Below are positions 11,283-55,334 of a stretch of DNA of 64,000 nt, in pieces (position 1 is the stretch's first letter; each line of letters opens with the position of its first letter). The position numbers and the translations under genes were made by a program. The stretch comes from Carpediemonas membranifera BICM (Eukaryota > Protista > Fornicata). The DNA lies in contig JAHDYR010000043.1 in the NCBI GenBank assembly GCA_019828565.1, positions 28,512 to 92,511 of the forward strand. The letters are read 5' to 3'. The notes beneath the pieces were generated by a model that worked only from the letters and a program-made list of their open reading frames with translations, was not told where the DNA came from and made no database searches.

Positions 11283-11614
11283 GGACATGGTAAAGCAGTA
11301 TTCTTTCAAGGAACAAGCAACATTTTCTTTATAATTCACAAGCCCTGGCTCCCACCCAGGGCCCGGCATTAGCTGAAATGCACTGCCGGTAGGCTGTAGC
11401 GGCAGCCAAAGGGGGGGTCACGTCATATCGTCCCCCTCCTAAGTACCCTGCCCGAAGAATGGAAGGTCACCAGGAGGTAACAAGGTTGGCCTGACAAGGG
11501 TCACCGAGACCGGCATCTAGGCCCCTTGTTAGGACAAGGATAGCAGGAGAGGAGCGGGAAGCTGGGGCTCCCAAATTCTGGGAATTCGCAGGATAAGGAA
11601 ACAGGACAAAGGCA

Positions 11615-14600
11615 ATGGTAACCTACAAGATACTTAGTCTGAACACAGAGGGACACATAGGAAGAGGAAAGGACTTCACGGCGTCTATGGCAACGGCGAT
11701 TCAGCTAAGGTTGAAGGACATAGAGGCAGTACTCATACAAGAGACATGGAGAACGGCGAATACGAGGGTTCATTGCTTCATGGACCTTGACTACGCACTA
11801 GCAGGGAGGGAGACGGAAGAGGACCTGGTCTTAGCCAACGAAAAACGAAAGGCGGATGTCAAAAGTCAGCACCGCATCAACCGACAACTAGGCATAGCAG
11901 GCAATGACGAACCTGCGCCAAGATGGAAGGGAACAAGGGAAGGCATCGGCACGATAGTGAGCCCACACGCAACTGCAAAGTGGGACATCGGCATATCGGA
12001 CAGCCTATCGGGAAGAGTGCAAGCCAGCATAATGAGAACCGGCAGGGACATACTAGTCATCAACGTGTATGGCCCCCCATCCGGCCACAGCAAGCAGGAG
12101 AAGGATGGATTCAGGGACACTATACAGAAGATCATGGACATGAAAGGGAGCATGGAGGCCATAATTATGGGAGACTGGAACATCGACCCAGGCCATGGAA
12201 AGATCCACCCGGTGGAAGGATATGATGGAGAAGCACAGGCTCAAAGCCATCATACCCAAGTCTGGGACGCTCACATCAGGAACATCAACCCCGGACTTTG
12301 CAGTGACAACACCAGGAATCCAGGGGGCGGAGATTGAGGTGGTAGAGTCTCAGAAGGTCGGGGTATGGGGCTCAGCACACAATGGAATCACACTAGCATG
12401 GAAGGAACAACGGTACTATGGCAGAAGAGGGCGAGACGTGGCTCTGGCCATACCCGAGGTGCACACCTGGCCCATGAAAAAGAAGAAGGGGCCAGTCACA
12501 GTCTCAAAGCTGAACAGGATCAAGAGCTCGGACCAATGGGAAGAGACTATAAGAGCATGCATGGGCGACCCAGTGAACAACAGGGGAGCAAAGGCAAGGG
12601 ACAAAGTGTTCGGGAACGGAGTGTGGAGCGAACTCCAGCGAACCCCATGGACAGAAATAGGCAACAGGACCAGGAAGGAAAGGATGAAAGAGGAGCTGGA
12701 GAAATACTGGGGAGAGCGCAGGGCCAAATGGGTGGCCGACCTCAGCAGAAGTGCAAAAGGGGGGTATAGGGCCTCAAGGGCCTCAGTGGAAGCTGCCATC
12801 AGAAGGTGGTGGTGTGATAACCAATACAAGGGAATGCCGGAGAGCCTCCTCAAGGACGGAGTGATAACCACGGACAAGGCGGCCATCAGCGAGATCCTCT
12901 TGCAACAGTATGCTAGAGTCAGCAGAGGCAGGGAACCCACCTGGAAGACATGGAGGGGCAGGGACGGAAATGAGTTCAAGGAAAGCGAGGTCAAAGCCGC
13001 AATCAAAAGGATCAGGAGGGACACCGCACCAGGGCCTGACCTCACATCTGGAGACATGCTGAGAGAGCTGGATGAGAAAGGCCTTAGGGAAGTGACGAGG
13101 CTCATCAACAGGGTCTACAGGGAGGGCGACGTACCCAAAGCATGGAAGTATGCCACAGTGTCGGCCATACACAAGACAGGGAAGCCAAGGGTCAAGCCGG
13201 AATCATATAGACCAATATCCTTGACACCACTGCTGTACAGGGTCTATGGTAGATTGCTCAAGATACGTCTGGAAGCAGCAACGAAAAGGTTCATACCAAG
13301 AGAACAGGCTGGTTTCCAGTCAGACAGGGACGTCATCCAGCAGATACAGTACATTGTGCAGCGGCACCAGGAGGGGGTGAGACCACGTCAATCTTTCTGG
13401 ACATCGAGAAGGCATATGACACGGTACCAAGGGACATTCTCATGGATAAGCTACAGGGTATGGGGGTGGAGGAGCACTTGATCAGGGCAATTCAAGGCAC
13501 AATAAAGGAAACCTGGATATCAGTCAAGGGGGCAAAGGCATGGGAAAGAACCAACAGGGGAGTTAAGCAAGGGTGCGTCCTGGCACCGACACTGTTTGTG
13601 CTGTTCATAGCTAACTGGCCCCACCTGGCCAGAAAGAAAATCAAGGGAGAACGGTACGACATCAGAGAACCGCCAAGGACCACGAGCCACCTCAGCGACC
13701 GACTACCGGCAGCACTTACCATGTTTGTGGATGACACTGCGGTCACAGGGAGCAAACCGGAGCATAGCCAGATGGTCGCCAACATAATGGTAGACATAAT
13801 CAGAGAGCATGAAATGAGGGTGAACGTCCAGAAGAATGTAATGATTAGCGTGGACAGAACAGCCCTAGTCAGGATCGAGGGGGTAACACTACTGCCAGAG
13901 AAGGAGGCGAGATACCTGGGATTATGGATCGCAAGTGGGAAGGACCCTATGTCGGCCTGCATAAGGCGGAAACAGGAGCAGAGCGAAAGGTACAAGAGAC
14001 TGGTGAGATGGGCAGGGTGGACCAGGGCAAACATGCCAGCACTAGCGAGCAGGCTACTACTGGAAATATATATATGGCCCAGGATCCTCTTCGGAGTCGA
14101 GGTGTGGGGGAACGCACCGGGAGGTAGAAGGATCTGGAATGACTGGCAGGGAATCATGGCAGGAACAGGACCGGGAGGGGGCGCAGCCATGAGGCTGATG
14201 AATGGATGGGTGGACCTCCAGGCACACATGGAATGGCTGGCAGTCAAAAGGATAGTCAACTACAGGGACCAGGATATACCAGTCAGAAACAGAGAATGGG
14301 GGCGAGGCACGGTTATGTGGGAAGCTAGGGAGAGAGTGCAGCATCTACTGGAGGGCACCAGAGAGGGAGCCCCCAAACCAGCGCTACTGGATTATGGCAT
14401 GGAAACGATCAGGAGGGGGTGGATGAAGCGGTGCAAAAGCCGTACGGCACTAGGACTAATGGAAATCATGGGGACAAGGAAATTAAGCAAGTGTCTGCAA
14501 GGTAAGCCTACGGTAGACCGAAAGGCTGGGAAGGGGCAAAGCAGGGCGGAATGGAAGAGAATTGTATCCATTGCAGCCAATGTCAGCCCATCCCCATCGT

Positions 14601-15055
14601 CGGCAGAGAGAGGGGAGGGCCCTATGAGAGCCATCACAGAGCTGGCCCAAGGCGCTGACCTAAAGAGAGAAATTAGCAGACTATGCCCCCTATGCTCGGA
14701 GGAGTCGGAGGTGAGCCTATTCTACAGGATCATTAGGGAAAAGCCAGGACCAGCAAGGAAGCAGGAAATGATCAGGGAGTGGGCAGAGGGCCAGAGGCTA
14801 GGATCGGCAGCGCACATAATCTGTGAATGCCCGGCAGTAGACAGGGGAGATGCTTGGACAAAGCTGTGGACAGCAGCGAAGCACAAAACTAAGGACTTGG
14901 AAGTAAGGCAGGGCCCCCAGGGCGAATGGTACCAGGAAAGACCCATCCTAGAATTACAGCAACTAATAATATGGGGCTCGGAGGACATTTGGGAAGGCCT
15001 CACGGCAGGACTACGGGAACTGGCAAAGGTTTACAACAGCTTCAAGGTGGAATAG
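11615..15055 (+). pseudogene. LINE ORF2: AP endonuclease + RT + C-terminal Cys/His knuckle, with two frameshifts (~12190, ~13375)
   Basis: SLNTEG, IQET, NVYGP, MGDWN, PDF, SAH; APGPD, YRPISL, QAGF, FLDIEKAYD, GVKQGCVLAP, FVDD; CPLC...HIICEC. Confidence 0.92.
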
Positions 15056-16425
15056 AAGCATGTCATGAACCCCTGACTCCAGGACCGGGAAGGGATGGAC
15101 AAGGAATCAGCCATGGACCACCCTCGCTGGGTGCTAAGCTCCTGGGATCAGTGAGGAAAGGCCCCACGTATCCCGGTAGCCAGGAACCAAAGCAAGGGAA
15201 GGAACGACTGCAAGGAAATAACAGGAAGGACAGACCAGAAATAAGAAAGAAAGGACATGCAACAAGGACAGAGCAAGGATAAGGTCAAGGAAATCCATAT
15301 TCATATGGTTGCACCACTCGTTGGGACCCCAAGGAAACTGCAGGGACTGGCCACGGGGGTCGGAGGGGCAAGGTGCCCCTGCCGCCCTTGTTAACGACAT
15401 GGGAAACCAGGGACATGTAGTGCAAGCGAAATGTTGTAAGGGGTAACAGGACAACCAGGCCCAGCGCCTGGGGGTACACCACCCATGCCCTGACCCACGC
15501 CACCTAACCAGGGTAGACAGCATGGACTTAGTCACTTTCCCCGCCTTCGGGTAGGCTTCCTAACAGAGTCGAGGGGGCATGGAATTGGGGAACCGGACAG
15601 ACGAGAGGGTGCCGTGGCTGAACGGCTCTACAAGGACTGCAGGGAAGCAAGGAGTGTCATAGTCAAGGTCCTGCAGGACGATCCTGCCTGTCAATGCCCC
15701 GAGGACAGACCCCCAGGCTCCCCGGATAGTTGCCGGACTTTCAGGGAGACAGGAAAGCATATTTGCACGGAGATGGCCGCAGGGCCTCTGGGGCGATTGG
15801 AATCGGCTTTCCGCGGAGACAGTAGCACCGAAAGCCCAAGGCAAACGCTGCTGACCAGTTTGCCACGGGAAATAGGCAGTACCCCGGGGCACTCAGCTCC
15901 AAGACAACGGGAAACAAGCTCAGTCCGGGGTCAGAATCCAAGCACCATAAATTTCTTTCTTTCTTTCCCTTGCATTCCTGGATAGTCGGCCTCGGCCTCA
16001 AGCCCGAACATCGGCTGTGGCGCAGGGTGAAGAGCACGAGCTCCCTAAGCGTCAAGAGAGACGCTTCAATTGACTACTTAAGACAACAGACACAGAACAT
16101 ATTCGGCCCGAAGACAGGGCTACACTCCTTCCGGAAGGGTGGGGCTTCCGAGCTGGCGTTGGGTGGAACGCCGCTCGAGGCGCTGCTTGCACTTGGTACC
16201 TGGAGGAGAGTGGAATCGATGAGAGCCTATATTGGCCCAGCCATCAGGACCAACACCGGATTCGCGGGGGAGTTGACGAAGAGCCTCCTCCGCCAGTAAA
16301 CATCTTGCGTTCCAGCAAGAACCTCCGAGGCGGTAATGGATTCCGCTGGGGGTATGCCTGCCCGAGGTCAGACAGGACGTGACTGGGCAGAGAGCACCTA
16401 TTACGGCAGTTGCGGTATAACCGTT

Positions 16426-23565: not shown

Positions 23566-23688
23566 CTCGTCGAGGCGGGCAGTGTTCCGCGCATTGAGCG
23601 GCACGTCGTAGAGCCTGAGTGGTTGGTTCCTCAGCTCACGGATCCCTCCCTCGATTAAGTGATCGTTGCTGTTCTGCGTCATATCGAG

Positions 23689-23723
23689 CCTTACCTTACC
23701 TTGCCTTACCTTACCTTAGCTTA
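23689..23723 (-). repeat. (TAAGG)n pentanucleotide array
   Basis: Six CCTTA-type units (one CCTTG) plus GCTTA. Confidence 0.9.
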
Positions 23724-25624
23724 CGGGCCCTGCCCGTGTTAAACCTTGGCGGTTGACCCACGACTTCGCCGCGGTGTTGTCTGTGAACACCGTTAGATTG
23801 GCGTTGCCCCTCTGCGCAGGCACCATCAGGACTCCCTGCCAGATTGCGTACAGCTCCTTCACGCATATGTTGGAATCCTGAACATCCCGAGGGAAGTGTC
23901 CTTGCGCTGTTCGTGACGCGGCCCCTTGGTATAGCGATGCGCCCCAGCCCTGGCCTGATGCGTCTGTCGCAACCGTGACCTGCAGATCTCCCTGCATGCC
24001 CCAAAGGCTCCTTAGCTCTGCGAATGGCCTGGAGGGTCGCTGCCGCAGGACCTCGTCCCAGGGTTCGAGAAGCGCCCTTAGCTCTGTTGTGACTGTGATG
24101 TAATCCGAGGGCTTCACCGCCTGAAGAGGACGAAGCCTCAGCAGGGCGGCGTGGGCTGTGGAGGAGAAGAAGGCCAGCTTGCCTAGTAGATTGGCCCAGT
24201 CTCTCGCGCGTAGTCTGCCCTGGACCAGGGCCTCCTGAAGGTGCTGCCTGTAATGAGCGCTCTTGTCCTCTGATAGCCTCATGGAGTCTGTCGAAGTGTC
24301 TAGTACGACCCCAAGATACTCGATCGACCTTGTCGGGGTCAGCTGTGACTTCTTCAGGCTCGGGATGACTCCTAGCGACGCCATGAGCTCGATCACCCCC
24401 TGCGTCGCACGTGCTAGAACGTCCTTGGACTTGTGGGTGAGCAAGAAGTCGTCCAGGTATACCGACACTTGTACGCCGAACCGTCGGGCTATGATCTTTG
24501 CCAGTTGTACCGTCACGCTCTGAAAGAAGAACGGGGCGGCCTGCCATCCGAAGCTGAGACCTCTGTAGTAGTAAGCTTTGCCCTCTGGTGTGACGACACC
24601 CAGGAGCTTCGCGTCCTCCGGAACGACCCCTAATTGGTGTTAGCCCGACCGTAGATCTATCTTTGTCATGTAAGCGTTGTGTGTGAGTGTGCTGAGGGCC
24701 CGCTTGAGGCCGAATAGTCGGAATGTGCGTGCCTCCGATGAAACAGCATTGAGCTGGCGAAGGTCGTGCACGACACGGATGTTCTCTGCGCCCTTGGCGA
24801 CACAGAACAGTGGGGCGGAGTGACGCAGGTCCTGGAGCGTGCACTCCTCTAGAACTCCCTCCTGTAGCATCTCTGCGATCTTGTCGTTGATCCTCGGGTC
24901 CATGGTACGTTGTGGTTGTGGTGGCGGTGGCGGCTGAGTGACGGAGATGGGTACGCCGTGGTGCAAAAGGTCTACAACCTCCTGGCTTGCACCAAAGCGC
25001 TCCCAAAGCTCCCATTTGGCATTCATTGATGGAAATTTTTGTCTTAATCTCTCTTGTTCTTCTTGTTCTTGCCGCCACCCTGGCCCCTCTGGTAGCTGGG
25101 CGGGCCTGGAAAAAAGTCTCCTTCGACATTGCTGTAGTTTTCGTCCTTCATCTTCAGGATCCTGCGGCGAGCCTGAAGTTCAAGATCAATCCTCTTCCTG
25201 TCCTTCTTATCCATCCTAGAAGCCTGCAGCATGGCGGAAATTCTCCGAACGAACATCGCCTCCTCTCTTAGCGGGCCCTTTGAAGGAAGATCTGCCAGTC
25301 CGTCGATGTACCGGATAGTAGCGTCAAAGTTCTCGTCCTCTTCATCCTCAACCTCTTCGTTCTTCTTTTCCTCTGCTTCCTCGTGCTCGCTAGCAAGATC
25401 GAAGATCGGGGACTCGTTCTCCCTTTCTCTTCCTTTTGCAGCAGCCAACTGGCTGACAGTTCCAGCTAGCTTCTCAATCTGCTCTTTTAGTCCCGCGAAA
25501 TCCGATGCCGTCGGCGGAGCCGAAGTTTCTACCATTCTGCCTGCTTAAAGTGCACCCGCACAACGATTGATCGTCTCTTGCGGATGGCGTCACCCAAGGT
25601 GACATTAGAGCTGATGTAGCCCCA
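23724..25624 (-). mobile_element. YR-6: 3'-truncated YR retrotransposon (gag 25044-25535, RT-RNase H)
   Basis: YLDD, TDASGQGWG, KELYAI, TDN; ends at the TAAGG array. Confidence 0.9.
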
Positions 25625-26489
25625 TGACCGATACCCCCGTCACATGACGCTACACGGCCCTGAGACCCCCCAGAACCCAAGTACTACCTCGATCTCGCCC
25701 CGCGAAGCCTCGACTGCTGAGTACCACTCGAGCCCATTGGCACTCGGGGTGCTGAGACGCCCGAGAGGGCGCACGGAAACGTGCAGTTTATGGCATCAGA
25801 ATTTCGAATGCCCGAAGGCACATCGGGCACGTCCGCAGAACCTCCTGTATCCCAGGAAGAGTTCCGAAAGTTTACCAACAACGTAACTGCCACATTGGAG
25901 TTCATGAAAACGAAGATGGAGAACATCGAGGAAAGATCCATCCAGAGGGAGGTAGAACAAGAAGAGTACGAGCTAGAAACCGATGAGCAAGCAACCCAGG
26001 GAACCTTCCAAGGCCTTCCGTCCTTCTTGTTCGATTTGGAGCTCCCCAAGAGGTACGGGCCCCGCGACGAAGCCAAGTTCCTACGCGAGATCATGCGTCT
26101 CCTGACGACCGCGGACCCGCACTCACTCGACGTGAACGATCTACTGCTCCGTCTCCTGAGCCGGTTCAAGGTCCTTCTCCTCAAGGACGACTACGACGAC
26201 AACGTCTGTGACTACGCCACTGCAGCCCTGCGAGCCACGCCCCCGAAGTCTGAGATGGAGATCGAGACGATCCTCGCTAAGGCCAAGACTAAGGGCAAGC
26301 GTAAGCGTCGGAATTTTCAGGAGCAGGGCTCCAGCAGCGTCGGCCGCCGGGCCCGCTCCTAATATTCCCATCAACCCGTTCGCGATGGCGGGTGTGGGAA
26401 CAATTCAGGGTAGCTCCAGCAGTAGTAGCGCGGGTACGAGACGGAATCCCCGTCGAGATCACAGCGCCTCCACCACCGGCAGCCCCACA

Positions 26490-28005
26490 GAAAGAAAGAA
26501 AGAAAGAAATTTATGGTGCTTGGATTCTGACCCCGGACTGAGCTTGTTTCCCGTTGTCTTGGAGCTGAGTGCCCCGGGGTACTGCCTATTTCCCGTGGCA
26601 AACTGGTCAGCAGCGTTTGCCTTGGGCTTTCGGTGCTACTGTCTCCGCGGAAAGCCGATTCCAATCGCCCCAGAGGCCCTGCGGCCATCTCCGTGCAAAT
26701 ATGCTTTCCTGTCTCCCTGAAAGTCCGGCAACTATCCGGGGAGCCTGGGGGTCTGTCCTCGGGGCATTGACAGGCAGGATCGTCCTGCAGAACCTTGACT
26801 ATGACACTCCTTGCTTCCCTGCAGTCCTTGTAGAGCCGTTCAGCCACGGCACCCTCTCGTCTGTCCGGTTCCCCAATTCCATGCCCCCTCGACTCTGTTA
26901 AGAAGCCTACCCGAAGGCGGGGAAAGTGACTAAGTCCATGCTGTCTACCCCGGTTAGGTGGCGTGGGTCAGCGGCAGCCCCAGGCACTAGGCCTGGTTGT
27001 CCTGTTACCCCTTACAACATTTCGCTTGCACTACATGTCCTTGGTTTCCCATGTCGTTAACAAGGGCGGCAGGGGCACCTGTGCCCCTCCGACCCCCGTG
27101 GCCAGTCCCTGCAGTTTCCTTGGGGTCCCAACGAGTGGTGCAACCATATGAATATGGATTTCCTTGACCTTATCCTTGCTCTGTCCTTGTTGCATGTCCT
27201 TTCTTTCTTATTTCTGATCTGTCCTTCCCTGTTCTTTTCCTTGCAGTCGTTCCTTCCCTTGCTTTGGTTCCTGGCTACCGGGATACGTGGGGCCTTTCCT
27301 CACTGATCCCAGGAGCTTAGCACCAGCGAGGGTGGTCCATGGCTGATTCCTTGTCCATCCCTTCCCGGTCCTGGAGTCAGGGGTTCATGACATGCTTCTA
27401 TTCCACCTTGAAGCTGTTGTAAACCTTTGCCAGTTCCCGTAGTCCTGCCGTGAGGCCTTCCCAAATGTCCTCCGAGCCCCATATTATTAGTTGCTGTAAT
27501 TCTAGGATGGGTCTTTCCTGGTACCATTCGCCCTGGGGGCCCTGCCTTACTTCCAAGTCCTTAGTTTTGTGCTTCGCTGCTGTCCACAGCTTTGTCCAAG
27601 CTTCTCCCCTGTCTACTGCCGGGCATTCACAGATTATGTGCGCTGCCGATCCTAGCCTCTGGCCCTCTGCCCACTCCCCTGATCATTTCCTGCTTCCTTG
27701 CTGGTCCTGGCTTTTCCCTAATGATCCTGTAGAACAGGCTCACCTCCGACTCCTCCGAGCATAGGGGGCATAGTCTGCTAATTTCTCTCTTCAGGTCAGC
27801 GCCTTGGGCCAGCTCTGTGATGGCTCTCATAGGGCCCTCCCCTCTCTCTGCCGACGATGGGGATGGGCTGACATTGGCTGCAATGGATACAATTCTCTTC
27901 CATTCCGCCCTGCTTTGCCCCTTCCCAGCCTTTCGGTCTACCGTAGGCTTACCTTGCAGACACTTGCTTAATTTCCTTGTCCCCATGATTTCCATTAGTC
28001 CTAGT
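26490..28005 (-). mobile_element. LINE copy 3, 5'-truncated
   Basis: TSD CCGGCAGCCCCACA(GA) at 26476-26491 and 28006-28021. Confidence 0.95.
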
Positions 28006-29077
28006 CCGGCAGCCCCACAGAGGACCATCGACCCGAGGATACTTCCGAAGCTCGAATCAATGACACAACAAGGAATCATCGAGCCGACGCCCCTCAGTCA
28101 GCTCAAGCACAGCGCCCCGCTGTTTGCTGTCCCCAAGGGGGAAGACATAAGAGTGATCCACGACCTGAGGCGGCTGAACACGGTCACACGCGAACGCCGC
28201 TCCTTCCGTCTGTTCGGCATACGTCGTGCCATCAACACACTCTCCAGCCAGGCCTGGATGGCCAAGATAGACCTAAGATCCGGCTACTCACAGCTGGCCA
28301 TCAGAGACTCGGACAAACCGCTCCTGGGCATCGCTCTGCCCGACGGTCGGGCGTTCCAATACCGCACGCTAGGCTTCGGTTGGACCGCCGCGCCTTATTT
28401 CTTCCAGTCCGCTATGGTCCAGGTAGCAAAGGTCATCGCCCTCCGCCACAAGGTAATCGTCAACGTCTACCTCGACGACTTCTTACTGTCAGCCGACAGC
28501 AGAGACCACCTCAGCAAGGAAATACCCAAGATCATCAAGACGATGGAGGCACTGGGCCTCATCCCGTCGCTGGAGAAGTGCATCTTAACACCGTGCCAGT
28601 GCATAGAATTCCTTGGCCTGCTCCTGAACACCACGTCCAACACCATCCGTCTCCCCGCCGACAAGGCCAAGAGGTACGCAGAGGCCCTATCAGAAGCACT
28701 CGTCAAGAAGCGCATCCGCGCGAAAGACTGGGCGAAGATCGTAGGCAAGCTCTCCTTCTTCGCCACCTCTGCAAGACGGGCTACCCTGAAGCTCCGCACG
28801 CTCCCTTCTGCCACGGAGAACTGGGTCGACATCCACCCCTACACAGCAGACCTCAAGGAGTGGCTGCAGCTCCTGGCCGTCCGACCAACCCGCTCCTTCG
28901 CCGAGTTGAAGAACCTATGGTCTCAGGACCAGCAACTAGAGCTGATTATTTCCACAGATGCGTCGGGCACAGGCTGGGGAGCCCAGTGGACCAACACGTC
29001 CGCGAACTCCCACGGTTCTTTCAAGGGCGCACTGGCGGAACAATCTATCAACGTGAAGGAGCTCGCCGCAGTCCTCT

Positions 29078-30655
29078 TTGGCTCACGCATCATACCAGCA
29101 CAGGACTCAGAGCGCAATCTCACGGTCTTCTCAGACAACAGCTCGTGCGTCGCCTGGATCAACAAGGAGGGCAGCTCAAAGGCCCCCCGATGGCGCTACA
29201 GACACTCAGGATACTCTACAAGGAGATGGAACGCAAGAAGCTCCTCATACACGCTCGACACACCCCAGGCCACCTCAATCTCGCCGCAGACCGACTGTCA
29301 CGCGGGTTGTCCACCCCACCCCACGTGCTGGAGACAATTCTCGAGACTTGGGGCCCCGTCGACGTGGACGCTACAGCACACCCAGACCGCACTCTACGCC
29401 TCCCAGGGTTTACCATCGAACACTGGCCGGACGGCCTGTTCAGGGACTGGCGCGGACACCGCGTTTATGCCGCGCCACACCCGTCCCCGATGACCTTGGG
29501 ACGGACATGGCAGACCCTCCTACCGATCTTAACGACCCCGACTACATCCCCTCCGAACTCGTGGACCTCAGCATGCTTCCTCGTCGTGCCAGACATTACG
29601 AGCCCCGAACTCCAACAACTCAAGGCGCACGCGACATGCAAGATTCCCTTCTCAGTACCGAAAGACGACTTCGCATCAGAGGACCAACAACTCCTAGACC
29701 GTCTCTCCAGGCCAAACGGGACCATCCGCTTCATAGCTCTCGCCTTCAGGACACGTTCTCCAGAATCCTGCAGCACCCAATACTGTCTCACATGCGCCGA
29801 GACGAGTCCAAGCGCTCAGTAGCCGGATGGATTACAGCATTCCTTGAGTACCGCGACCCACACGAGGACGACACCGATGAGTACCGAGCCTTCCTGGAGG
29901 ACGAGGCCGAGTATAATGCACCAGCCACGGTCGATCGAAAGGGATACTGGATCGAGAAGGCCGCCCCACTCTTTTCCGACTGGACCCCCAGCACCTACTG
30001 TCCACAAATCAGAAGAGGCATAGCAGACAACGCCAACACCACCGGCATGACAGGCGGGTCAGCCCCAGTCACAAGGGAGGACATGATCAGGGCCATCAAG
30101 TCCAGGAACAGCGACATCGCGACGTACCAAGCGACACTATTCGCCGCGATTGCTTACCTGACCGTGAGCCGCGGAGCTGAAATCTTCAACCTGACGAGCG
30201 CTGACATCGTGTTCAAGGCAAACGGGGACGCCCAGCTGCTCCTTGGTCGCACAAAGACGCTTGCAAAGGTCACTAAGTCACTACCCAACACCCTACTAGG
30301 CCCATTCAACCCAGCGCTGGCCCTGAAGAGATGGGTACGAGGCTTGAACCTTCCACCGGACGCCTGCATCTGGCGCGCGATCACATCCTCATCGAAGGTC
30401 AGCCGTAAGACCCCGTGCACAATGCGACGTATGCGAGAGGAGCTACGCACAGTCTTCCACGACAACAGGATTGGCCTACACAGCTTCCGCAAGGGAGCGG
30501 CTTCCGAACTGGCACTAGCAGGCACACCGATAGAGACCTTACTCCAACTCGGAACCTGGGCTAACGGCAACTCTCTCCGGCCTTACATCGGGGAGGCTAT
30601 CCGCAACCACCCTCGTCAAACCCGACAAACTGCAAACACCCTGTTCCCATTCTAA
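29078..30655 (+). CDS. YR-7 tyrosine recombinase (true start downstream of ORF start)
   Basis: VSRGAEI, RTKT, HSFRKG, GTW, RPY. Confidence 0.88.
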   Translation: MAHASYQHRTQSAISRSSQTTARASPGSTRRAAQRPPDGATDTQDTLQGDGTQEAPHTRSTHPRPPQSRRRPTVTRVVHPTPRAGDNSRDLGPRRRGRYSTPRPHSTPPRVYHRTLAGRPVQGLARTPRLCRATPVPDDLGTDMADPPTDLNDPDYIPSELVDLSMLPRRARHYEPRTPTTQGARDMQDSLLSTERRLRIRGPTTPRPSLQAKRDHPLHSSRLQDTFSRILQHPILSHMRRDESKRSVAGWITAFLEYRDPHEDDTDEYRAFLEDEAEYNAPATVDRKGYWIEKAAPLFSDWTPSTYCPQIRRGIADNANTTGMTGGSAPVTREDMIRAIKSRNSDIATYQATLFAAIAYLTVSRGAEIFNLTSADIVFKANGDAQLLLGRTKTLAKVTKSLPNTLLGPFNPALALKRWVRGLNLPPDACIWRAITSSSKVSRKTPCTMRRMREELRTVFHDNRIGLHSFRKGAASELALAGTPIETLLQLGTWANGNSLRPYIGEAIRNHPRQTRQTANTLFPF

Positions 30656-31056
30656 CACCATAAACCATCGCACCGGAGGCCGTCAAGGAGACGCCCGGTC
30701 CAGCCGAAAGCAGCAAGGAGCTGCTGGCACTTGAGGCAGGCATGGAGCCGCCATACTCCACTGTAATTACTCTACTTACCTCAGATCTGCGGACGGTGTT
30801 CCCCTTTGGGAGTATGAGTTAGGTGGCTAGCCTAGTCTAGCGAGTACCACTCGAGCCCATTGGCACCCGGGGTGCTGAGACGCCCGAGAGGGCGCACGGA
30901 AACGTGCAGTTTATGGCATCAGAATTTCGAATGCCCGAAGGCACATCGGGCCTAAAGGAGCCCGAGAAGAATAAATCCTTTACCCCCCCCTTTGGGAGTA
31001 TGAGTTAGGTGGCTAGCCTAGTCTAGCACCCTCAATCTCAAGATCTAGTAAAAGGA

Positions 31057-31130
31057 TGCCCCCAGTGAGGCTCGAACTCACGACCTATAGCTTATGAGAC
31101 TATCGCTCGTACCGACTGAGCTATAGGGGC
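31057..31130 (-). tRNA. tRNA-Met(CAT), elongator type
   Basis: Full 74-nt cloverleaf GCCCCTA...CT CAT AA...TTCGAGC...TGGGGGCA, followed by TCCTTTT terminator; no encoded CCA. Confidence 0.96.
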
Positions 31131-31236
31131 TTTTGAGACGTCAGCTCCGGCGTGAGATAATGGAGCATGGGCGATGGATCTGCCTGATTCGATTTATTCG
31201 AGCCGAACGAATCGGGATCGAATCAATTACGGCCAG

Positions 31237-31668
31237 ATGGCTGAAGAAACCGAGAACAACACCGGGGACCGCACGCCTGAAGCAGAGAAGATCCCAGATC
31301 CGCAGAAGCGCATCAACGAACTAACAGGCGAGTTATTGACGCTTCGAGATTTAATGTCGCTGGAGTGGCGCCACCCGGACTCACTAGCCATGCGTAACGA
31401 GTCCGAATGGCTGCAGATGCTCTACAGGGACATCGTCCTCCACCCGAGCTGGACAACCGAGACGATCAAGCTTCAGCTAATGCTCCGTCATGAGCTTCTC
31501 CTCATTAAGGACATCAATGGCTTTCACTACGCCGACGCAGTCAAGGACTACGTCAGAGCCCGACGTTCCAGGATCCGTGATTCCGAGAGCCTCACCGTCC
31601 TCATCGCAGAGGCCCGCTCCAGTGCCAGAGTCGCCCCCAAGAGCGATAAGCGCCCCAGAAAAAACTAA
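31237..31668 (+). CDS. YR-8 gag-like protein
   Basis: ATG in the CAGATG context shared by the families; MRNESEWL...LLLIKD motif. Confidence 0.8.
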   Translation: MAEETENNTGDRTPEAEKIPDPQKRINELTGELLTLRDLMSLEWRHPDSLAMRNESEWLQMLYRDIVLHPSWTTETIKLQLMLRHELLLIKDINGFHYADAVKDYVRARRSRIRDSESLTVLIAEARSSARVAPKSDKRPRKN

Positions 31669-33629
31669 TTGTGCAAGACCATCAATCAACCGAACCACCA
31701 CTCCCCACAACCCGTCGAGCGGGTTCTCTCCGCCACTCAGTGGCCGCGTGGCGGCGCTTGGGAGCGCCATCCGACGTGGTCTCTTGGGTTGGCGACGGCA
31801 TACCCATCGAACTGACACAACAACCGAGCAATCCTCGAATATTCCATCTCCCAGAGAAGGACTTAGCCAAGCTCGATCCGCTGGTGCGCGAAATGCTCTC
31901 ATCGGGTGCCATACACCGCGTCTCATCACCACCGAAGCTCACATGTCCTCTCTTTCCAGTCCCGAAGGGTACAGACAAATGGAGAGCAGTCCACAACCTC
32001 ATACCGCTCAACAAGGTCTCCAAAGAGCGCCGTACGTTCCGCTTGTTCGGTGCCAAGAGAGCAGTTTTAAGCCTTGCGCCAGGAGACATGATGATGTCGC
32101 TAGATCTCCATGCAGGCTACCACCACGTGTCCATTCACCCATCATCGCAGTCCCTCCTAGGCTTTATTCACCGCGGCGTCCACTATCAGTTCACAGTCCT
32201 CCCATTCGGATGGTCCGCGGCGCCATTCTACTTCCAGAAGATCATGATTACCGTAGCGAAGATTATCAAGCGCCATTGCCGCGGTGTAGGAGTTGCCGTC
32301 TATCTGGACGACCTTCTATTCTTCGGGAAGAAGAAGGCCCTTCTGCGCGAGCGCCAGCGCCTCCTGGACATCATGAATCAGCTAGGCTTTATCATCAACC
32401 ACGACAAGTCAGTCCTAGAGCCCACCACAGTCCTGACATACCTCGGCATGCGCATCGACTCAGCTGCTCGGGTCATTTCCCTAGACTCGAAGAAGCGCAG
32501 CAGATACCGCCAATTGGTCGAGAGTGCGCTGATAGAAGGCAATATGAGCAACAAGAGGTGGCAATCCCTCATCGGGAAGCTATCCTTCGCATCTCTGTGC
32601 TTCCCCGACGGCCGCGCATGGCTGAGACCTCTTCAGACAGCCACCGAGACGGAGAAAGGCTTTACGAAAGCCGTCCTCAAGGCCCTATCGTACTGGAAGC
32701 AACTGCTGAGCAGCGAAGATCATCCTCCCCGCTCCTTCGACTCCCTGATCAGCATGTGGGGCGCAAGCCCGGCAATCGACATCCACATCCAGTCGGACGC
32801 CTCAGAAAAGGGCTTAGCTGCCATTATCAGGGACGGCTGCAAGCAGACGATCGTATCCTCCTCCGTCTCCCCCAACAGCCCGCTCCAGAACGAGTCCATT
32901 GCGGTGAAAGAGTTCTTTGCGGCGACGAACGCCGTGGAGACGCTCCTTCCACATCTAACGGACAGGGAGATCACCGTATTCATCGACAACAGCAACGCCT
33001 GCGCCTGGTTGAACAAGCAGGGATCAACGCGAGCCCCGCCGATGATCCAGGACGCTTGTCTCACCCTCTTTTCCCGCTTGGCCGCCTGCCAGATCACACT
33101 GAGAGCCCAGCACGTCAGCGGGCACCTCAATGTCTCCGCAGATGCTCTGTCGAGATACCAGCGACTGGAATGGCGGACACCACGAGGGATCCTCGCTGCC
33201 ATACTGGAGGAGTGGGGCCCTCTCGAGGTCGACGTGACTGGTGGGAGGGACAAGGAGTTACTACTTCCCGGCTTCGTCGAGCGTTCGCTCACGCTGGCCG
33301 AGAGCGGCATGAGCTCGGAGTGGCGCAGCAAGAGAGTCTTCGCAGCACCACCATACGCCCTTCTTCCAGCCGTAGCCAACCGACTGGCCCTCATTCGCGC
33401 CTCACCAGCCTCACATCCGAGGCATACCAAGTCTGCAGTGGTCGTGGTGATGCCCGACGTCCAGTCCGAGGCGGTACGCCGCATCAAGGGCCTCTCCCCC
33501 TTCAAGAGAACGTTCAGGGTCTACGCGGAGGACATGAAGGACTCAGAGCTCCAGAACATCCTCGTGGGGGAAAAGCCGCGGCTCCTCGCCGTCTTCGTGC
33601 CGACGACGCCGCTTTCAACGCAGTACTAG
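31665..33629 (+). CDS. YR-8 RT-RNase H-MT-like polyprotein, intact, in -1 frame to gag
   Basis: SLDLHAGYHH, LPFGWSAAP, YLDD, SDAS, IDN, ADALSR, WGPLEVDVT, FAAPPY; no N-terminal ATG. Confidence 0.92.
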   Translation, partial: LIVQDHQSTEPPLPTTRRAGSLRHSVAAWRRLGAPSDVVSWVGDGIPIELTQQPSNPRIFHLPEKDLAKLDPLVREMLSSGAIHRVSSPPKLTCPLFPVPKGTDKWRAVHNLIPLNKVSKERRTFRLFGAKRAVLSLAPGDMMMSLDLHAGYHHVSIHPSSQSLLGFIHRGVHYQFTVLPFGWSAAPFYFQKIMITVAKIIKRHCRGVGVAVYLDDLLFFGKKKALLRERQRLLDIMNQLGFIINHDKSVLEPTTVLTYLGMRIDSAARVISLDSKKRSRYRQLVESALIEGNMSNKRWQSLIGKLSFASLCFPDGRAWLRPLQTATETEKGFTKAVLKALSYWKQLLSSEDHPPRSFDSLISMWGASPAIDIHIQSDASEKGLAAIIRDGCKQTIVSSSVSPNSPLQNESIAVKEFFAATNAVETLLPHLTDREITVFIDNSNACAWLNKQGSTRAPPMIQDACLTLFSRLAACQITLRAQHVSGHLNVSADALSRYQRLEWRTPRGILAAILEEWGPLEVDVTGGRDKELLLPGFVERSLTLAESGMSSEWRSKRVFAAPPYALLPAVANRLALIRASPASHPRHTKSAVVVVMPDVQSEAVRRIKGLSPFKRTFRVYAEDMKDSELQNILVGEKPRLLAVFVPTTPLSTQY

Positions 33630-34509
33630 GTCTAGACGAGCTCAAAGGCTACGTGGCAACGACCAGGCGTGACACGGCGGGTGTCGTCTCCCAGTTCCTG
33701 ACCTTCCGAGAGGCCAACCCGGCATCGGACCGCGACACATTCCTGGCGTGGCTCGCTCGCGAGGCTGAGCTAGTAGGCCCAGACCGTCTGGCGCACCGGG
33801 GCTCGCTGGTGGTAAGGTTTGCACCCCTGGTATCAACGTGGGCACCCCCAGCTGCTCAAAAGGCATTCATCACCGAAGCGAAGCGCGCTACAGTCCCCAG
33901 GCCGCAACGCAAGGTCCCAGTGCGGGCTGCACGCATCCACCGCCTGATCCCCAAACTCGCCGGCCGCGACGAGGAGTTCCACCAAGCCTTCTTATTCGGC
34001 GTCGTTGCCTACGCAACAATGTCGAGGCGCAGTGAGATCCTACCCCTCACTCCTCGGGATATCAGGGTGAAAGCAGGACTCGGCGTCTCTATCACCATCG
34101 ACTCCACCAAGACAGGGCTTCGCGCAGTTAAGAAGTTCATCCCGTGGGTCGAAGGCGCGCTCAATCCGGCAGGGATGCTCATGGCTCACCTGCAGCGCTG
34201 GTGCCAGGACAGAGACGCCACCATCTGGAAGTCCCCCAACCTCGATGGGTCGAGGCTGGACCGAGGGCCGTTGCCCCCGCTATGCTCCAAGACAAGCTGA
34301 AGCAGGTCTTTGGAGACCCAGTTGGATCCCATAGCTTCCGTCGCGGGGCCGCAGCGGACGCTGTACTTCGCGGAATGCCCACTCCAGTGGTCATGGCCCT
34401 CGGTACTTGGAAGTCCGAGAGTTCCCTCCAGAGCTACATCGCCGAAGCGGTGCGGCTCGACCAGGAGACAGCTGTGACGAGGTGCGAATGGTTCGCGCAC
34501 CTCGAATAG
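33560..34509 (+). pseudogene. YR-8 tyrosine recombinase (one frameshift near 34275; start approximate)
   Basis: MSRRSEI, STKT, HSFRRG, GTW, QSY. Confidence 0.85.
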
Positions 34510-34808
34510 CAGTCGTCTCCTTCCTTTACTCGTACGGGTACGAGTGGTCCATAAAGATTGAATGGTCACCATCGGGATGGTGTAGGCGTGCGGGCGGGAA
34601 GCCCCAGGAGAATTCATAAGTGAATGTGAGTGTCTGCCTAGTCAGACGAGACGTCAGCTCCGGCGTGAGATAATGGAGCATGGGCGATGGATCTGCCTGA
34701 TTCGATTTATTCGAGCCGAACGAATCGGGATCGAATCAATTACGGCCAGATGGCTGAAGAAACCGAGAACAACACCGGGGACCGCAAATCGCAAAATCCC
34801 GAAAGCGC

Positions 34809-34883
34809 TCCAGCCGTAGCTCAGATGGTTAGGCCCCCAGCCTGAGAGACGGAGGGTCGCGGGTTCGATTCCAGTTGGGGTCA
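34809..34883 (+). promoter_or_regulatory. tRNA-derived Pol III promoter (A and B boxes) inside the C region of YR-8
   Basis: A box TAGCTCAGATGG 34817-34828; B box GGTTCGATTCC 34862-34872; stems degenerate. Confidence 0.7.
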
Positions 34884-35162
34884 GACATTCCACAAGCTCA
34901 GTGGAAACAAAACAAAAGGAGCAATAACGCGAGACGTACTCAGGTCCGGCGAGTTAACAGGACGTTGAGGGAAGAGCCGAAGCCAAAGTGGGCTAGGCAA
35001 TGAAGCCATGGAACCCGTGACCCAGGGGTCCTCTTGACACCACGACGTTTTACAGTCCGCGGGACCGCGGGCACAGGGAACATTACGCGACGAATCATGT
35101 AAATGTTCCGCCCCCCAGGAGAATTCATAAGTGAATGTGAGTGTCTGCCTAGTCAGACGGCA

Positions 35163-36919
35163 AGGCCAGCGGAGCCAAAACTTCGGCGCGAGAGGTCGAG
35201 GATGATTCGATACGATCTCAAAGACGGGATCGTGCGTCTCATAAGGGCGGTTCAGTTGTTCAAGAGCGAACTGAAACAGATGGGAGACGCCGCCCAAGAG
35301 ATCGCAGAGCTCAAAGCCACCGTTCAACAGCTTCAAGACGCATTTACTGCCGGCGGCAACGTCCGAGAGACAGTAGATCTGCTTCGGCAAGAGACCACCA
35401 TGACTTGGAAGCGTCCTGCTTCATCCACTATGCGCGAAGAGGCGGAGTTCCTCGAGGAGATCTACCGCAGCTTCAAGTTCAATCGAATCAGTGGCTTCGC
35501 CGTACTCGCTCGCATCTTCCTCCGTCACCGAGTCCTATGGGTGAAGGACCGCTACGGCTACCTAGCCGCCTCTGCTGTCTCCACCGCGGGCATGGCCGCC
35601 CTTGCCGAGCGCCACGAGATGAACGAGACGGAGATCGAGACTCTCGTCCTCCGCACCCTGTCCAAGATCCCCCGCCTGACCGAGAAGAACACCAAGCCCG
35701 GCACCGGACATGACGGCGGCAACCGGGGTTTTCACGGGAAGAAGCCGAAGCGCGCCGGCACGAAGAACTCAAACTAAGTCAAAAGAAACCACCCATCAAG
35801 GATCCTCGCCCCGGTCCACAGGTCCTAACTCCTCATCCAACCACAAATCCCACTACTCCTCAATCTCCTCCCCTGTCACCGACGCCTCCTCCTCCCCCGT
35901 CCACAGCACCTCCTCCCCCGTCAGTTCCACCATTTCCCTGCATCAACAGGCAGTGGCGCCTATGGAGGCACTTGGGCGCGCCATCAGAGGTGGTTACGTG
36001 GCTACGCGAGGGCGTCCCGATATCCCTAAGAGCGCACCCTCGTCATCCGCGCCTACCACCAACTCGCGCCAAGGACCGCAAGGCATTCCGCGACCACCTG
36101 AAAACCCTCCTGAGCCTGGGCGCGGCAAGCCCATGCCGGTCTCCCAGCTTGATCTCACCTATCTTCACTGTGCCGAAGACGCCACCAGAGACGCGTCTGA
36201 TCCACGACCTAAGGGCATTGAACGCAGTGTCAACGGAACATCGAACCTTTCGGCTGAAGGGAGTCAAGCAAGCGATGGCCCAGCTTCGCGAAGGAGACTA
36301 CATGGCACGCTTGGACCTAGTCAAGGGCTACTACCAGTTAGGGGTCAGGGCCTCGGACAGCCCGCTGCTGGGTTTCTTGGTCGACGGGAGACCCTATGCC
36401 TTCAACGTCCTACCCTTCGGCTGGGGCCCAGCGCCATTCTTCTTCCAAAGGGTGATGCTGACAGCAGCGCAGATCGTAGCACGGATGTTCCCAGGCATCA
36501 ACTTGACCATCTATCTCGACGACTGGCTCCTGTCCGGGGACAAGAAGACACTGACCGCTGCGATGCCCGGCATACTACAGCTCCTAGAGAACCTCGGCCT
36601 GGTCATCAACAGGAAGAAATCGCAGCTCTCACCCACGCAGCAGACCGACTTCCTTGGCTTCGTCATGGACTCTGGCCGGCGGGGGATCGCTCTGCAGGAC
36701 AGCAAGCGGCAGAAGTACCTCTCACGAGTCAGGGAGGCCTTGGCATCGGGGGCCTTCCTTCGGAGGGTGACGCTCGGCATTACGTAAGGTCGAGCGAGGT
36801 AATTTACTCCGGCTTACACAGAGATAGACCCGGGACGATGCGAGAACGCGACACAATAAATTACCTACCCCCCCCCTGTGGGAATGGACGGAGTCTACCG
36901 GATCGTCAGCCTGTCTGAC
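35163..36919 (+). mobile_element. YR-9: internally deleted YR retrotransposon (A1, gag 35280-35777, RT to ~36750, then C-B)
   Basis: RLDLVKGYYQ, LPFGWGPAP, YLDD; RT fused directly to hairpin module, C-run and B end; closest to YR-11. Confidence 0.88.
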
Positions 36920-36940
36920 TGGCAAGGCCAGCGGAGGCAT

Positions 36941-47415: not shown

Positions 47416-49645
47416 GAGCTGTGATCGTCTAGAAAGTCGACTTTCCAGAAAGCAAAAAATGCGAAATCGATGAAACGCAATGGTTACGCAACAATGCTGT
47501 TCAGAAGTGGAACATAGAGTTGTTTACATGGTGGAACTGATGTTGTTATTCAATATAGCCGCGTTTTCGGGATCCAAAAAGTGTTTCCGGCGGTGCAAAA
47601 CGAAAAAGTGCCATATCTCGCGAACGAGAAGGAATTGGAGCCTCTTAACCCGTTTTTTGAACGCCGTGTAAGATTAGGCGGAATGTAACCAACCTCTGGT
47701 AAGAATTGACATGGGGACATCGATGGCACCTAAAAGTGCGCCATTTGACCCTTTCAGAATCGTCGGGTATGTTTCAAAGACTTTCAAGAGGGGCAGGACC
47801 CCAGGTAAGGATACCCATAACATAGCGCGCTAATACAGTGGTACCACGCAAGATTTGATCAGATAATATTAGGTAATTTAGATTTGGTAGTGAGGTAAGC
47901 ATATCTCAGAAACGTGACTGGACATCACGCCGGGCATAAGACACAGGGTTTTTATAGCCAGTCTGGTCAACGGGTATCCGGTGAACTCGAAAGTCCCGAG
48001 CTCACAACGGTTCAGGCAATAGGGCTTAGTCCATTGCCAACTCCGGCTCCATGGCGAGTCCCCATGGAAGCGACGGTTACTGGAGCTTGTATCTGGGCAA
48101 TTCACCCGGACCAAGCACCTAGCACACCCTTCATAATAGTGTTGAGTTTTTTGATGCTCTACCGGAGCATGGGAGGGAAGTGTTGGTTCATCAATAGATT
48201 ATTTAATAGTCTTGAGTCGTCCAGCTCGACACATGGGTGTCGAGCTCTATTCTTTGTAAAGCTTTGTTCTCACGAACCCACAGCCTCGGCCAGAGTCCCG
48301 GAGTCACCCCGTCCTTCGGGGGATAGGCAGCCGTGGCTGCTGTGCGGTTCATCTGCATAGTATTCTTGCCTTTCTTCGAACTGGCCAGGATTGATCTGAC
48401 TCTGATTCGACCTAAGAGCCAGCATCAATAAGACCTCGACCGCTCAGCCGAAGATCGTCCGGTGCCTCCGCTCACCTTCAACGCGCTCCGCACGAGCCTA
48501 ACAGGCCACACAAACAAAACACAACAGGATGTTTAAAGCGGGCATCGGCGTTCTTCGGATGAGTGACGAGAATGAACTCGTCAAACGTAAAAGTGCTCGA
48601 GGACGCATGGTCCCCGAGCCGCCGCCGCCCACCGTGGGAGATCCAAGGGTGGATCCCCACCGGGTTGTGATTGGCGCGGCCACACCCGGACCACGCATGT
48701 CCGGACGCGACCGGGCCGTACGGTCAGTCTGACTGGGCAGACGGTCCGGTAGACTACGTCTATATCCCATAGGGGGGGGAGAAGAGTTTATTATCGATTG
48801 TGTGTTCTAGTGTAAGTAGTAAACTCCTCTCACCAGGGCCCGCTTACCTCGGCCGTGTTGGCCGGGACCCCGGAGTCACTCCCGTTCGGGAGGATAGCAG
48901 CCCACCGGCTGCGTCGCGGTTCATGCTTGCCATTCTTTGCTCTCTTTGTTGTAACGATGCGCTAATTTATTTCGACACACTGGTGTCGTCTCGGACCAAG
49001 TAGGACCAAGACGACACCCATAAAATATATAAATATTAATACGGTATTGCGACACTACCCCTCCCCCCCACCGAGAGTATTAAAGCCACTTTGCAAATTG
49101 TGTCAGAAACCCATCCGATGGTCGAGGATCTTCCTTCAGGGTGGAACCGGGTTCGACCCCCGGAGTCACCATATTTTTCATTGAATGGGTCTTAACCTGC
49201 ACGACCCAGCGATGAGTCGAAAAGAAGGAGGAGGCGAAGGACGGAAAAAAATGGAAAGGGTGTACTCGATATGCCCTTGCAGCGGCCTACCTCCACCTCC
49301 TGTCTGAGGTCTGAGTACCTCGTGTGGTGGCCGAAACACGAGTCGATGGCGAAAGAGTGAACGGGGAAGATGATCGCAACGAGAGCTGAACCCGAGGGAA
49401 ATGGGGAGATATATAAAGGTGATTGTACTGCTGTAGCACTAGGTTCTCACGGGCATTGGTTCCCCCGCAATGCGCAAAAATTTGGAATCAATCGACTATC
49501 GATTAACTGGGGAGGTTTGGACCGAAATTCCCCGCAAAAGAGGTGTAACAAGCATGTGTAGAGCGATATTGGGCGGAATAATTACTTCCTGGGGGGTAAT
49601 TGAGCATAATTGGCTGCTCGCCGATTGAGTTGCCTAATACTGCGG

Positions 49646-51295: not shown

Positions 51296-51309
51296 CGACT
51301 GACGGTTCG

Positions 51310-52693: not shown

Positions 52694-53093
52694 GGTTCAA
52701 CCTTGGCTCCTTGAGCCGGAATGGGGCCGAACAACGTGGAATACTCAGCAAGTAGCGCTCGTACCTCGCTTCGGAGCGTGGCGCTCGCGGATTCGGGAAT
52801 TTCAACAGCACCAACGTCCTCCGAGACGTCTAACTGGTTCAAACTCAGCGGAATGTCGTCCCCGTCCTCCTTGCTCAGATTTTCGGCTACGAGCTGGAGG
52901 AATAAGGAATCCTTCGTGAGAAGCCCGAGTACACGAAGAATGTCGGTGCCAATAAGGATTTTCTCGCGGTCCCCACTGAGGATTGCGAACTTCGCCTTAA
53001 AGCGCGTTGGGGCTCCCGCCAGCGTGAGGTGTAACCAAGCCTCAGTACAGTGGTTAGTTGTCGAAATGGAACCGTCAGTCGAACCGTCAGTCG

Positions 53094-54743: not shown

Positions 54744-55334
54744 CCGCAGTATTAGGCAACTCAATCGGCGAGCAGCCAATTATGCTCAATTACCCCCCAG
54801 GAAGTAATTATTCCGCCCAATATCGCTCTACACATGCTTGTTACACCTCTTTTGCGGGGAATTTCGGTCCAAACCTCCCCAGTTAATCGATAGTCGATTG
54901 ATTCCAAATTTTTGCGCATTGCGGGGGAACCAATGCCCGTGAGAACCTAGTGCTACAGCAGTACAATCACCTTTATATATCTCCCCATTTCCCTCGGGTT
55001 CAGCTCTCGTTGCGATCATCTTCCCCGTTCACTCTTTCGCCATCGACTCGTGTTTCGGCCACCACACGAGGTACTCAGACCTCAGACAGGAGGTGGAGGT
55101 AGGCCGCTGCAAGGGCATATCGAGTACACCCTTTCCATTTTTTTCCGTCCTTCGCCTCCTCCTTCTTTTCGACTCATCGCTGGGTCGTGCAGGTTAAGAC
55201 CCATTCAATGAAAAATATGGTGACTCCGGGGGTCGAACCCGGTTCCACCCTGAAGGAAGATCCTCGACCATCGGATGGGTTTCTGACACAATTTGCAAAG
55301 TGGCTTTAATACTCTCGGTGGGGGGGAGGGGTAG

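Follow-up and report, generated by a model that had tools for sequence, protein, structure and literature searches.

PAT-like tyrosine recombinase retrotransposons very probably integrate beside tRNA genes at a fixed position and orientation in Carpediemonas membranifera

The stretch of DNA analysed here, hereafter the window, comprises 64,000 nucleotides of the Carpediemonas membranifera genome (C44:28512-92511 in an assembly of 24.2 Mb and 69 contigs) and consists of transposable elements almost throughout, plus two tRNA-Met(CAT) genes. Several of the elements around these two genes, here called YR-7, YR-8, YR-9 and YR-11, are retrotransposons that rely on a tyrosine recombinase (YR) and carry split direct repeats in the arrangement A1...B1-A2-B2, so that an element begins with an A repeat and ends with a B repeat; the arrangement was found in YR-7, YR-8 and four other families. 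Here we report how these elements and their relatives throughout the genome are placed with respect to tRNA genes. It is very probable that PAT-like YR retrotransposons integrate beside tRNA genes at a fixed position and in a fixed orientation, the RNA polymerase III (Pol III) complex being the proposed source of the positioning.

The first tRNA-Met(CAT) gene lies on the minus strand (31057-31130; ARAGORN; Rfam RF00005, 66.1 bits) and the second on the plus strand (57330-57403; ARAGORN and Rfam). Both loci are parts of a single inverted duplication, in which 23566-25718 is the reverse complement of 61187-63340 at 100% identity over 2.15 kb; the later differences between them are YR-7, a CRE-like reverse transcriptase (RT) element and the presence of YR-8 at one locus and YR-11 at the other on the upstream side. 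The second locus retains the empty site of YR-7 (57421-57443, minus strand, with the insertion point between 57432 and 57433). This 23-mer has exactly two matches, the other being 61175-61197 on the minus strand, where chance would give none. The left half of the site extends up to 25718 at the filled copy and the right half resumes at 31028, which delimits an insert of 5309 bp (25719-31027, plus strand). Not a single base has been gained or lost at the insertion point, and the insert ends 29 nt from the 3′ end of tRNA-Met, towards which the 3′ end of YR-7 is directed, in antisense to the tRNA. The intervening 29 nt (31028-31056) are native, being identical to 57404-57432 and common to the tRNA-Met paralogs on contig C16. 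The comparison of empty and filled sites thus bears out the original prediction of an exact insertion 29 bp past the tRNA 3′ end without a target-site duplication. The two copies of the empty site on which that prediction drew are both exact; however, they are not independent. The sequence 57392-57520 equals 61146-61274, a duplication of about 129 bp on both sides of the 3.6-kb CRE-like RT element (57521-61145, minus strand), and both copies are therefore one locus that this insertion has split. The duplication begins 12 nt inside the tRNA-Met 3′ end.

Past the insertion point lies a repeat-like stretch (57433-57520, minus strand; copies at 61187-61274 and 25631-25718) that, to judge from its sequence, may be what is left of the 3′ terminus of an older antisense element of the downstream clade described below, and the left flank of YR-7 may be repeat-derived. 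The boundary at +29 was also considered as the 5′ end of a sense-oriented element, 'Z', which is ruled out because tRNA-Met paralogs share their flank to +32 and +42. Judging by the A starts seen at 304 and 621, the A-type start of element Z appears to lie near 61281, which also speaks against this reading.

On the other side of the first tRNA-Met gene, 4 nt (31131-31134) separate the tRNA 5′ end from the 5′ end of YR-8 (31135-35158, plus strand, 4024 bp). With 0 nt after the YR-8 B2 repeat follows YR-9a (35159-36919, plus strand), an older element of the same upstream type displaced outward, and 1 nt behind it the 5′ start of another YR-9-type element, YR-9b (36921-36933, plus strand), previously noted as a stub. 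The 5′ end of the second tRNA-Met gene is likewise faced, again at 4 nt, by the 5′ end of an upstream-clade element, YR-11 (55442-57325, minus strand), whose family also stands 4 nt upstream of a tRNA-Phe gene (locus L009). YR-11 is truncated distally at an inverted repeat ending at 55441, a perfect repeat of 2.7 kb (48948-51695 and 52694-55441) around a 998-bp centre. It had been claimed that YR-8 and YR-11 point away from their tRNAs and that related elements are stacked behind YR-8, and both claims are correct (YR-8 ends at 35158, the YR-9-type element starts at 35159 and the next at 36921); the accompanying gaps of 5 bp for YR-8 and about 7 bp for YR-11 need revision to 4 nt in both cases, given the start of YR-8 at 31135 and the end of YR-11 at 57325.

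Whether these arrangements are peculiar to the window was judged from two directions. tRNA genes were listed genome-wide with Rfam, which scored 63 among 497 candidates, and the list was later extended to 78; it is incomplete. ARAGORN runs allowing introns returned spurious 600-nt 'tRNAs' and lost real ones, and were dropped. A tRNA-centred sample was then formed from the 20 top Rfam-scoring loci with 4.9 kb on either side, selected blind to transposons and containing 24 tRNAs, whereas element-centred tests used the coordinates of repeat copies together with junction patterns (an element end joined to an A box or a B box) and control patterns. In the blind sample, the 5′ end of a YR element is found 1-4 nt before the first base of the tRNA in 16 of 24 cases, with gaps of 2 nt (n=6), 3 nt (n=4), 4 nt (n=4) and 1 nt (n=2). 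The probability of so many abutments by chance is about 2e-59, assuming at most about 1100 YR copies in the genome. The elements concerned belong to at least six families and their A1 and A2 repeats are 98-100% identical. Locus L003 has no element on either side of its tRNA, and L001 yielded no YR coding match, only short YR-like motifs downstream.

The element-centred tests lead to the same position. The A repeat of YR-8 occurs in 22 copies, all 100% identical: three are internal A2 repeats, 14 abut a tRNA, four follow the B end of a different upstream element after 1-2 nt and one lies elsewhere. Thus 14 of 19 YR-8 5′ ends are located 2-4 nt from a tRNA, on 12 contigs and at 11 anticodons (Phe, Lys twice, Gly-ccc, Gly-gcc three times, Asp, Arg, Met, Val twice, Thr and Glu), and 18 of 19 are either at a tRNA or stacked 1-2 nt behind an upstream element. 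Half of the tRNAs adjoining YR-8 (7/14) are absent from the 63-tRNA Rfam list, so that the fractions of elements near tRNAs given here are lower bounds. A second upstream family has 37 A copies, ten of which are A2 repeats or tandem partners; 16 of the remaining 27 candidate 5′ ends abut the 5′ end of an A-box-bearing tRNA, representing at least 11 types including Ser/Leu-type tRNAs, and the control patterns gave 0 matches. The bases within the gap vary among loci and no conserved target sequence is evident.

Fifty of 82 RT matches in the genome lie within 12 kb of a tRNA on the 78-tRNA list; 48 of these run antisense to the tRNA and 2 in the sense direction (p = 2e-12). In the blind-sample loci every tRNA-adjacent element is antisense to its tRNA. 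With the tRNA read forward, upstream elements have their RT at about -500 to -1900 and their YR at -2500 to -3900, and downstream elements have the YR at +220 to +880 and the RT at +1640 to +2040. In an IQ-TREE phylogeny of 32 RT domains from the fetched loci all six downstream elements form one clade (100/97) that includes no upstream member, and all 14 upstream elements fall into three other clades (98/100, 85/96 and 98/93); rows of the tree without an assigned side occur in both groups. The notion of upstream and downstream subgroups that track clades is upheld by this tree, and position-specific tRNA targeting by such subgroups, as originally predicted from the window, is supported genome-wide. 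The tRNA-adjacent copies are not derived from one duplicated locus, since YR-8 is found at 14 tRNAs and the second family at 16; nor do most copies lie far from tRNA genes, as the YR-8 tally (18/19 at a tRNA or in a stack) and the RT matches (50/82 within 12 kb) make clear.

The downstream side is free of a second tRNA in 16 of the blind-sample loci; a YR 3′ end is located there at about +20 to +50 in eight and a CRE-like element at +36 in four. The YR-7 family accounts for seven junctions between a B box and a B end, with gaps of about 15-44 nt (Asn, Val, Arg, Met twice and two others), and a further downstream family, 'ccaca', for nine B ends 15-45 nt past the end of a B-box-bearing tRNA; control matches were 0 for either family. 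When the 39 'ccaca' copies are compared with the 78 tRNAs, 12 prove to be directly adjacent, allowing for zero, one or two terminal 237-nt A-C-B units, and another 13 are directed towards a tRNA no more than 12 kb away, in several cases at spacings of about one or two element lengths. Paralogous genes reveal which part of the flank is native: the 3′ flank is shared to +29, +32 and +42 among tRNA-Met genes, to +17 or +38 for Gly-gcc, to +22 for Lys-ctt and to +36 for Thr. The paralogous Met, Gly, Lys, Asn and Thr genes have only the tRNA and 17-42 nt of 3′ flank in common, beyond which lie different elements at different offsets.

A number of further observations concern the downstream flank. 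Unoccupied tRNA 3′ flanks (L003, L024, L025 and L042, at about +22 to +35) share a short motif with the pattern CCTTAAACTGC, which is weaker in L018, L029 and the Thr loci. It may belong to the tRNA genes as a native downstream signal or serve the downstream clade as a landmark. One downstream family has varied ends, consisting of B alone, B-A-C-B or B-A-C-B-A-C-B (L004 5009-5504; L006 4856-4877; L008 4604-4861), and a solo A-C-B unit of 314 bp occupies 304-617 in the window; the terminal A-C-B may act as a separate mini-circle that integrates in tandem. CRE-like RT elements begin exactly 36 nt after four tRNA-Thr(agt) genes (downstream flanks of L013, L015, L016 and L017) and may represent a third, non-LTR (lacking long terminal repeats) tRNA-associated lineage or one duplicated locus. 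At L041 a repeat with 13 copies among the fetched loci, distinct from the characterised YR families, begins at +26 after tRNA-Ala(agc) (C6:11625).

Stacks of upstream elements provide a record of successive insertions. The spacer past the B2 repeat of the inner element measures 0 nt in the window, 1 nt in L014, L005 and L012 and 2 nt in L008, and no bases are repeated at the stack junctions, that is, no target-site duplication is found there. Spacers of 0-2 nt imply that newcomers land within the 3-5 bases beside the tRNA and that older copies are pushed outward. They also lead us to reject, for the upstream clade, insertion always at the terminus of the resident element; the stacking fits a tRNA-based ruler better than recombination at a resident terminus.

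The anatomy of the elements is that of a YR retrotransposon of the DIRS order. YR-7 begins with repeat A1 (25719 to about 25829, plus strand; direct repeat D13 with 30842-30951), within which a gag-like open reading frame (ORF) starts (25781-26362, plus strand, from the ORF list). The RT/RNase H frame (28012-29493, plus strand; PF00078, E = 4e-20) has four more copies in the genome that are 100% identical, and is followed by the tyrosine recombinase frame (29078-30655, plus strand; PF00589 at residues 344-504, E = 4.8e-9, 36.6 bits, above the cut-off). The 3′ repeat block (30801-31027, plus strand) is composed of B1 (about 30801-30841), A2 (30842-30951), a short C and B2 (about 30984-31027). 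The description of the insert as an entire 5.3-kb YR-7 holds for its length of 5309 bp; its sequence is composite, and includes a nested fragment at 26491-28005 on the minus strand. This fragment, 5′-truncated and non-LTR-like, separates the gag-like ORF from the RT frame. It is an antisense copy of the (TTTC)n-ended element that occupies 11509-15967, to which inverted repeats I10-I13 (14449-15967) connect it, and a 15-bp duplication lies on either side of it (26476-26490 and 28006-28020).

YR-8 (all parts on the plus strand) comprises A1 (31135-31273), a gag-like ORF (31174-31668), an ORF for RT, RNase H and a weak Dam signal (31671-33629), the YR up to about 34509, B1 to 34647, A2 (34648-34786) and B2 to 35158. 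A 936-codon frame (31490-34300) with the recombinase at its C-terminal end overlaps the whole of the 652-codon RT frame (31671-33629) in another phase. A-box-like and B-box-like motifs are present between A2 and B2 (34807-34883); their reading as a 'tRNA-like module' was discarded after the Rfam tRNA model gave no match even at E = 10. The RT domain PF00078 is found in YR-7 and YR-8, and RNase H (PF17917) in YR-8 at 28.5 bits, above the cut-off; no integrase domain was detected among the ORFs scanned. The Dam methyltransferase domain PF05869 scores below its cut-off of 28.1 bits in YR-8 (21.9 bits) and in the relatives P0001 (25 bits) and P0002 (23 bits), and YR-7 gave no match to it. By layout (split direct repeats, RT-RNase H, the sub-threshold Dam signal, then YR) the elements would be PAT-like, and the Dam signal argues weakly against Ngaro for YR-8. 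An RT query against a protein database returned four proteins only. The relative P0001, whose RT is 54% identical and whose genes run gag, RT/RH/Dam, YR, is carried on contigs of 2.8-4 kb in another assembly (L044-L048; GCA_002919055.1 and four SRA runs); these contigs end at repeats and bear no tRNA.

Taken as sequence analysis, the targeting itself is about as secure as such work allows. Position, polarity, clade specificity and independence of flanking sequence are observed, as is the lack of target-site duplications, the latter at one empty site and at the stack junctions. In the upstream lineages the 5′ end (A1) is placed 1-4 nt before the mature tRNA, pointing away from it, and in the downstream lineage the 3′ end (B) is placed about 15-50 nt after the tRNA, just beyond the T-run. 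New upstream copies enter the few bases between the tRNA and the resident element, so that most tRNA genes come to be surrounded by oriented stacks. If DIRS-type elements are a guide, the integrating molecule is presumably a DNA circle joined B-to-A, which the YR would insert, and the Pol III pre-initiation complex would position the recombinase or another protein of the element. For the upstream lineages the reference point may be TFIIIB or the transcription start; for the downstream lineage it may be the terminator or the downstream edge of TFIIIC. The sequence of the target DNA would then not be the guide. The downstream clade, at least, is also able to recombine into the B-like ends of resident elements, as DIRS-1 does into itself. 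For the full scheme, in which the YR integrates a multi-kb circle without homology to the target, contact with Pol III sets the position and two sister lineages use separate docking points with fixed polarity, we put the chances at only somewhat better than even.

Several points weigh against targeting through the Pol III machinery. The tether to Pol III factors is a well-motivated proposal drawn from the examples of Ty3 and the TRE elements. Because the tRNA list is incomplete, no place could be assigned to 6 of 12 YR-7 ends, to 14 of the 39 'ccaca' copies or, in the second upstream family, to 11 of the 27 candidate 5′ ends. The one YR-8 5′ end that is neither at a tRNA nor in a stack (L033, 1100-1500) lies 6 nt before the ATG of a minus-strand ORF, and an Rfam scan of that site found no RNA family. 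None of five 5S rRNA genes has an adjoining YR match, and an extension to all Pol III genes is unsupported; these genes are spaced at a constant distance of about 9.55 kb (C23:8851-47168), probably within a ribosomal DNA unit. A search for U6 returned one sub-threshold match. Downstream offsets are spread from +15 to +50, and several newer downstream elements are embedded 13-14 nt deep in an older B end: 13-nt remnants of older B repeats occur in L002 and at C16:733982, and YR-7 itself lies beside a B-like stretch.

These downstream cases bring in the strongest competing explanation, namely att-like recombination (named for the attachment sites of phages) in which the recombinase reads a DNA sequence in or near tRNA genes or at the ends of resident YR elements, the link with tRNAs being secondary. 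Besides the newer elements 13-14 nt inside older B ends, it draws on the stretch to the left of the YR-7 site, which resembles the B end of the element itself and into which the A1/A2 repeat (D13) extends by 14 nt, on the direct abutment of YR-8 and YR-9 with 0 nt between them, and on an insertion within a B-like end at 273-303 of the window, far from any tRNA. It is opposed by the variation of upstream gaps and flanks over at least 30 loci and of tRNA 5′ ends with isotype, by the stacked upstream elements, which are mostly 1-2 and not 0 nt apart, so that the resident end is not the crossover point, and by the Gly, Lys and Met paralogs, where downstream insertions lie in native flank at differing offsets. 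As a general account it is unlikely; nonetheless, the downstream insertions in or at older B ends indicate that sequence-directed recombination contributes, at least to secondary insertions. In two unrelated loci (L002 at +28 to +41 and C16:734085-734098) a 13-nt older B remnant plus 1 nt stands between the native flank and the newer element, a hint that cleavage occurs at a constant offset within B.

An alternative in which integration is random and selection then retains only the harmless insertions at the sides of tRNA genes in a compact genome is far less credible. The genome is indeed compact, and purging could be fast given how recent the YR copies are (their A repeats are 100% identical); however, selection could not produce a window of 1-4 nt, a 48:2 antisense bias and clade-specific sides. 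The suggestion that the copies descend from one or a few tRNA-plus-element loci, or that elements carry a tRNA as cargo, finds some encouragement in the inverted duplication of the window tRNA-Met loci (2.15 kb at 100%) and in the same downstream CRE-like element at four tRNA-Thr loci, but is the least probable of all and already contradicted, for one family occurs at 11 or more anticodons on many contigs with differing gap bases, copies of a single tRNA bear different families and no tRNA precedes the internal A2 repeats.

Integration guided to tRNA genes is a textbook case of a safe harbour in compact genomes, represented so far by LTR elements (Ty1, Ty3, DGLT-A and Skipper-2) and non-LTR elements (TRE and NLTR). 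Among YR elements only DIRS-1 has been well studied, and its target is itself. A literature search turned up no description of tRNA genes as targets of YR, DIRS-like, PAT-like or Ngaro elements, nor any study of Carpediemonas transposons covering tRNA targeting. A 2026 preprint links Dam domains in Carpediemonadida with DIRS-like elements and does not mention tRNAs. Field reviews likewise list LTR and non-LTR elements as those that target Pol III genes, and describe the self-targeting of DIRS-1 (PMC5006619; PMC5911963). The YR lineage of C. membranifera differs in its tighter spacing, strict polarity and lack of duplications, is present at about two thirds of blind-sampled tRNAs (16/24), and brings another enzyme chemistry, as well as the metamonads, into the convergent evolution of Pol III targeting. 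If the full scheme outlined above is true, a fourth, independent retrotransposon order uses tRNA genes as a safe harbour, by a break-free and duplication-free route for the insertion of DNA beside them. The young, 100% identical copies offer a natural system for studying target choice by a tyrosine recombinase without sequence homology. Since an element end replaces all DNA more than 1-4 nt upstream of the tRNA, one may also ask how Pol III initiation copes with that end or exploits it.

PAT of Panagrellus, kangaroo of Volvox and Ngaro share the A1...B1-A2-B2 repeats and the order gag, RT/RH (with a methyltransferase in PAT-like elements) and then YR; to our knowledge no tRNA-gene specificity has been reported for them. 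DIRS-1 of Dictyostelium discoideum resembles the elements described here in combining RT/RNase H with a tyrosine recombinase, in its presumed circular intermediate and in inserting into its own copies, as some downstream-clade copies do, but has inverted terminal repeats and targets its own centromeric copies and not tRNA genes (PMC5006619). The tyrosine integrases of phages and integrative and conjugative elements with tRNA attB sites also pair a tyrosine recombinase with a tRNA gene target. They recombine at a defined sequence within the 3′ portion of a single tRNA gene, whereas the insertions described here lie outside the gene, at many isotypes, with no shared core evident.

In precision the elements can be compared with Ty3, the Ty3/gypsy LTR element of Saccharomyces cerevisiae, which attains near-nucleotide accuracy at the upstream edge of Pol III genes. 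Ty3 generates a 5-bp duplication. It employs a DDE integrase and inserts about 12-15 bp before the mature tRNA end, unlike the tyrosine recombinase, absence of duplication, distance of 1-4 nt and strictly antisense orientation seen here. Its insertions fall 1-4 bp from the transcription start through a contact of integrase with TFIIIB (PMC5006619; PMC5911963). The dictyostelid LTR elements DGLT-A and Skipper-2 have independently evolved targeting of tRNA flanks, 13-33 bp upstream and 7-136 bp downstream (PMC5006619), with LTR and integrase chemistry and at other distances than the YR elements. Among the non-LTR elements, Dictyostelium TRE5 and TRE3 form two phylogenetic subgroups that occupy opposite sides of tRNA genes, about 50 bp upstream and about 100 bp downstream, and NLTR-A of D. 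purpureum inserts 2-6 bp upstream of the mature tRNA start (PMC5006619). These elements use target-primed reverse transcription and no recombinase, and all except NLTR-A lie farther from the tRNA; NLTR-A is the closest positional precedent for the YR elements of C. membranifera, and TRE5 and TRE3 are the closest parallel for their division into subgroups on opposite sides of the gene.

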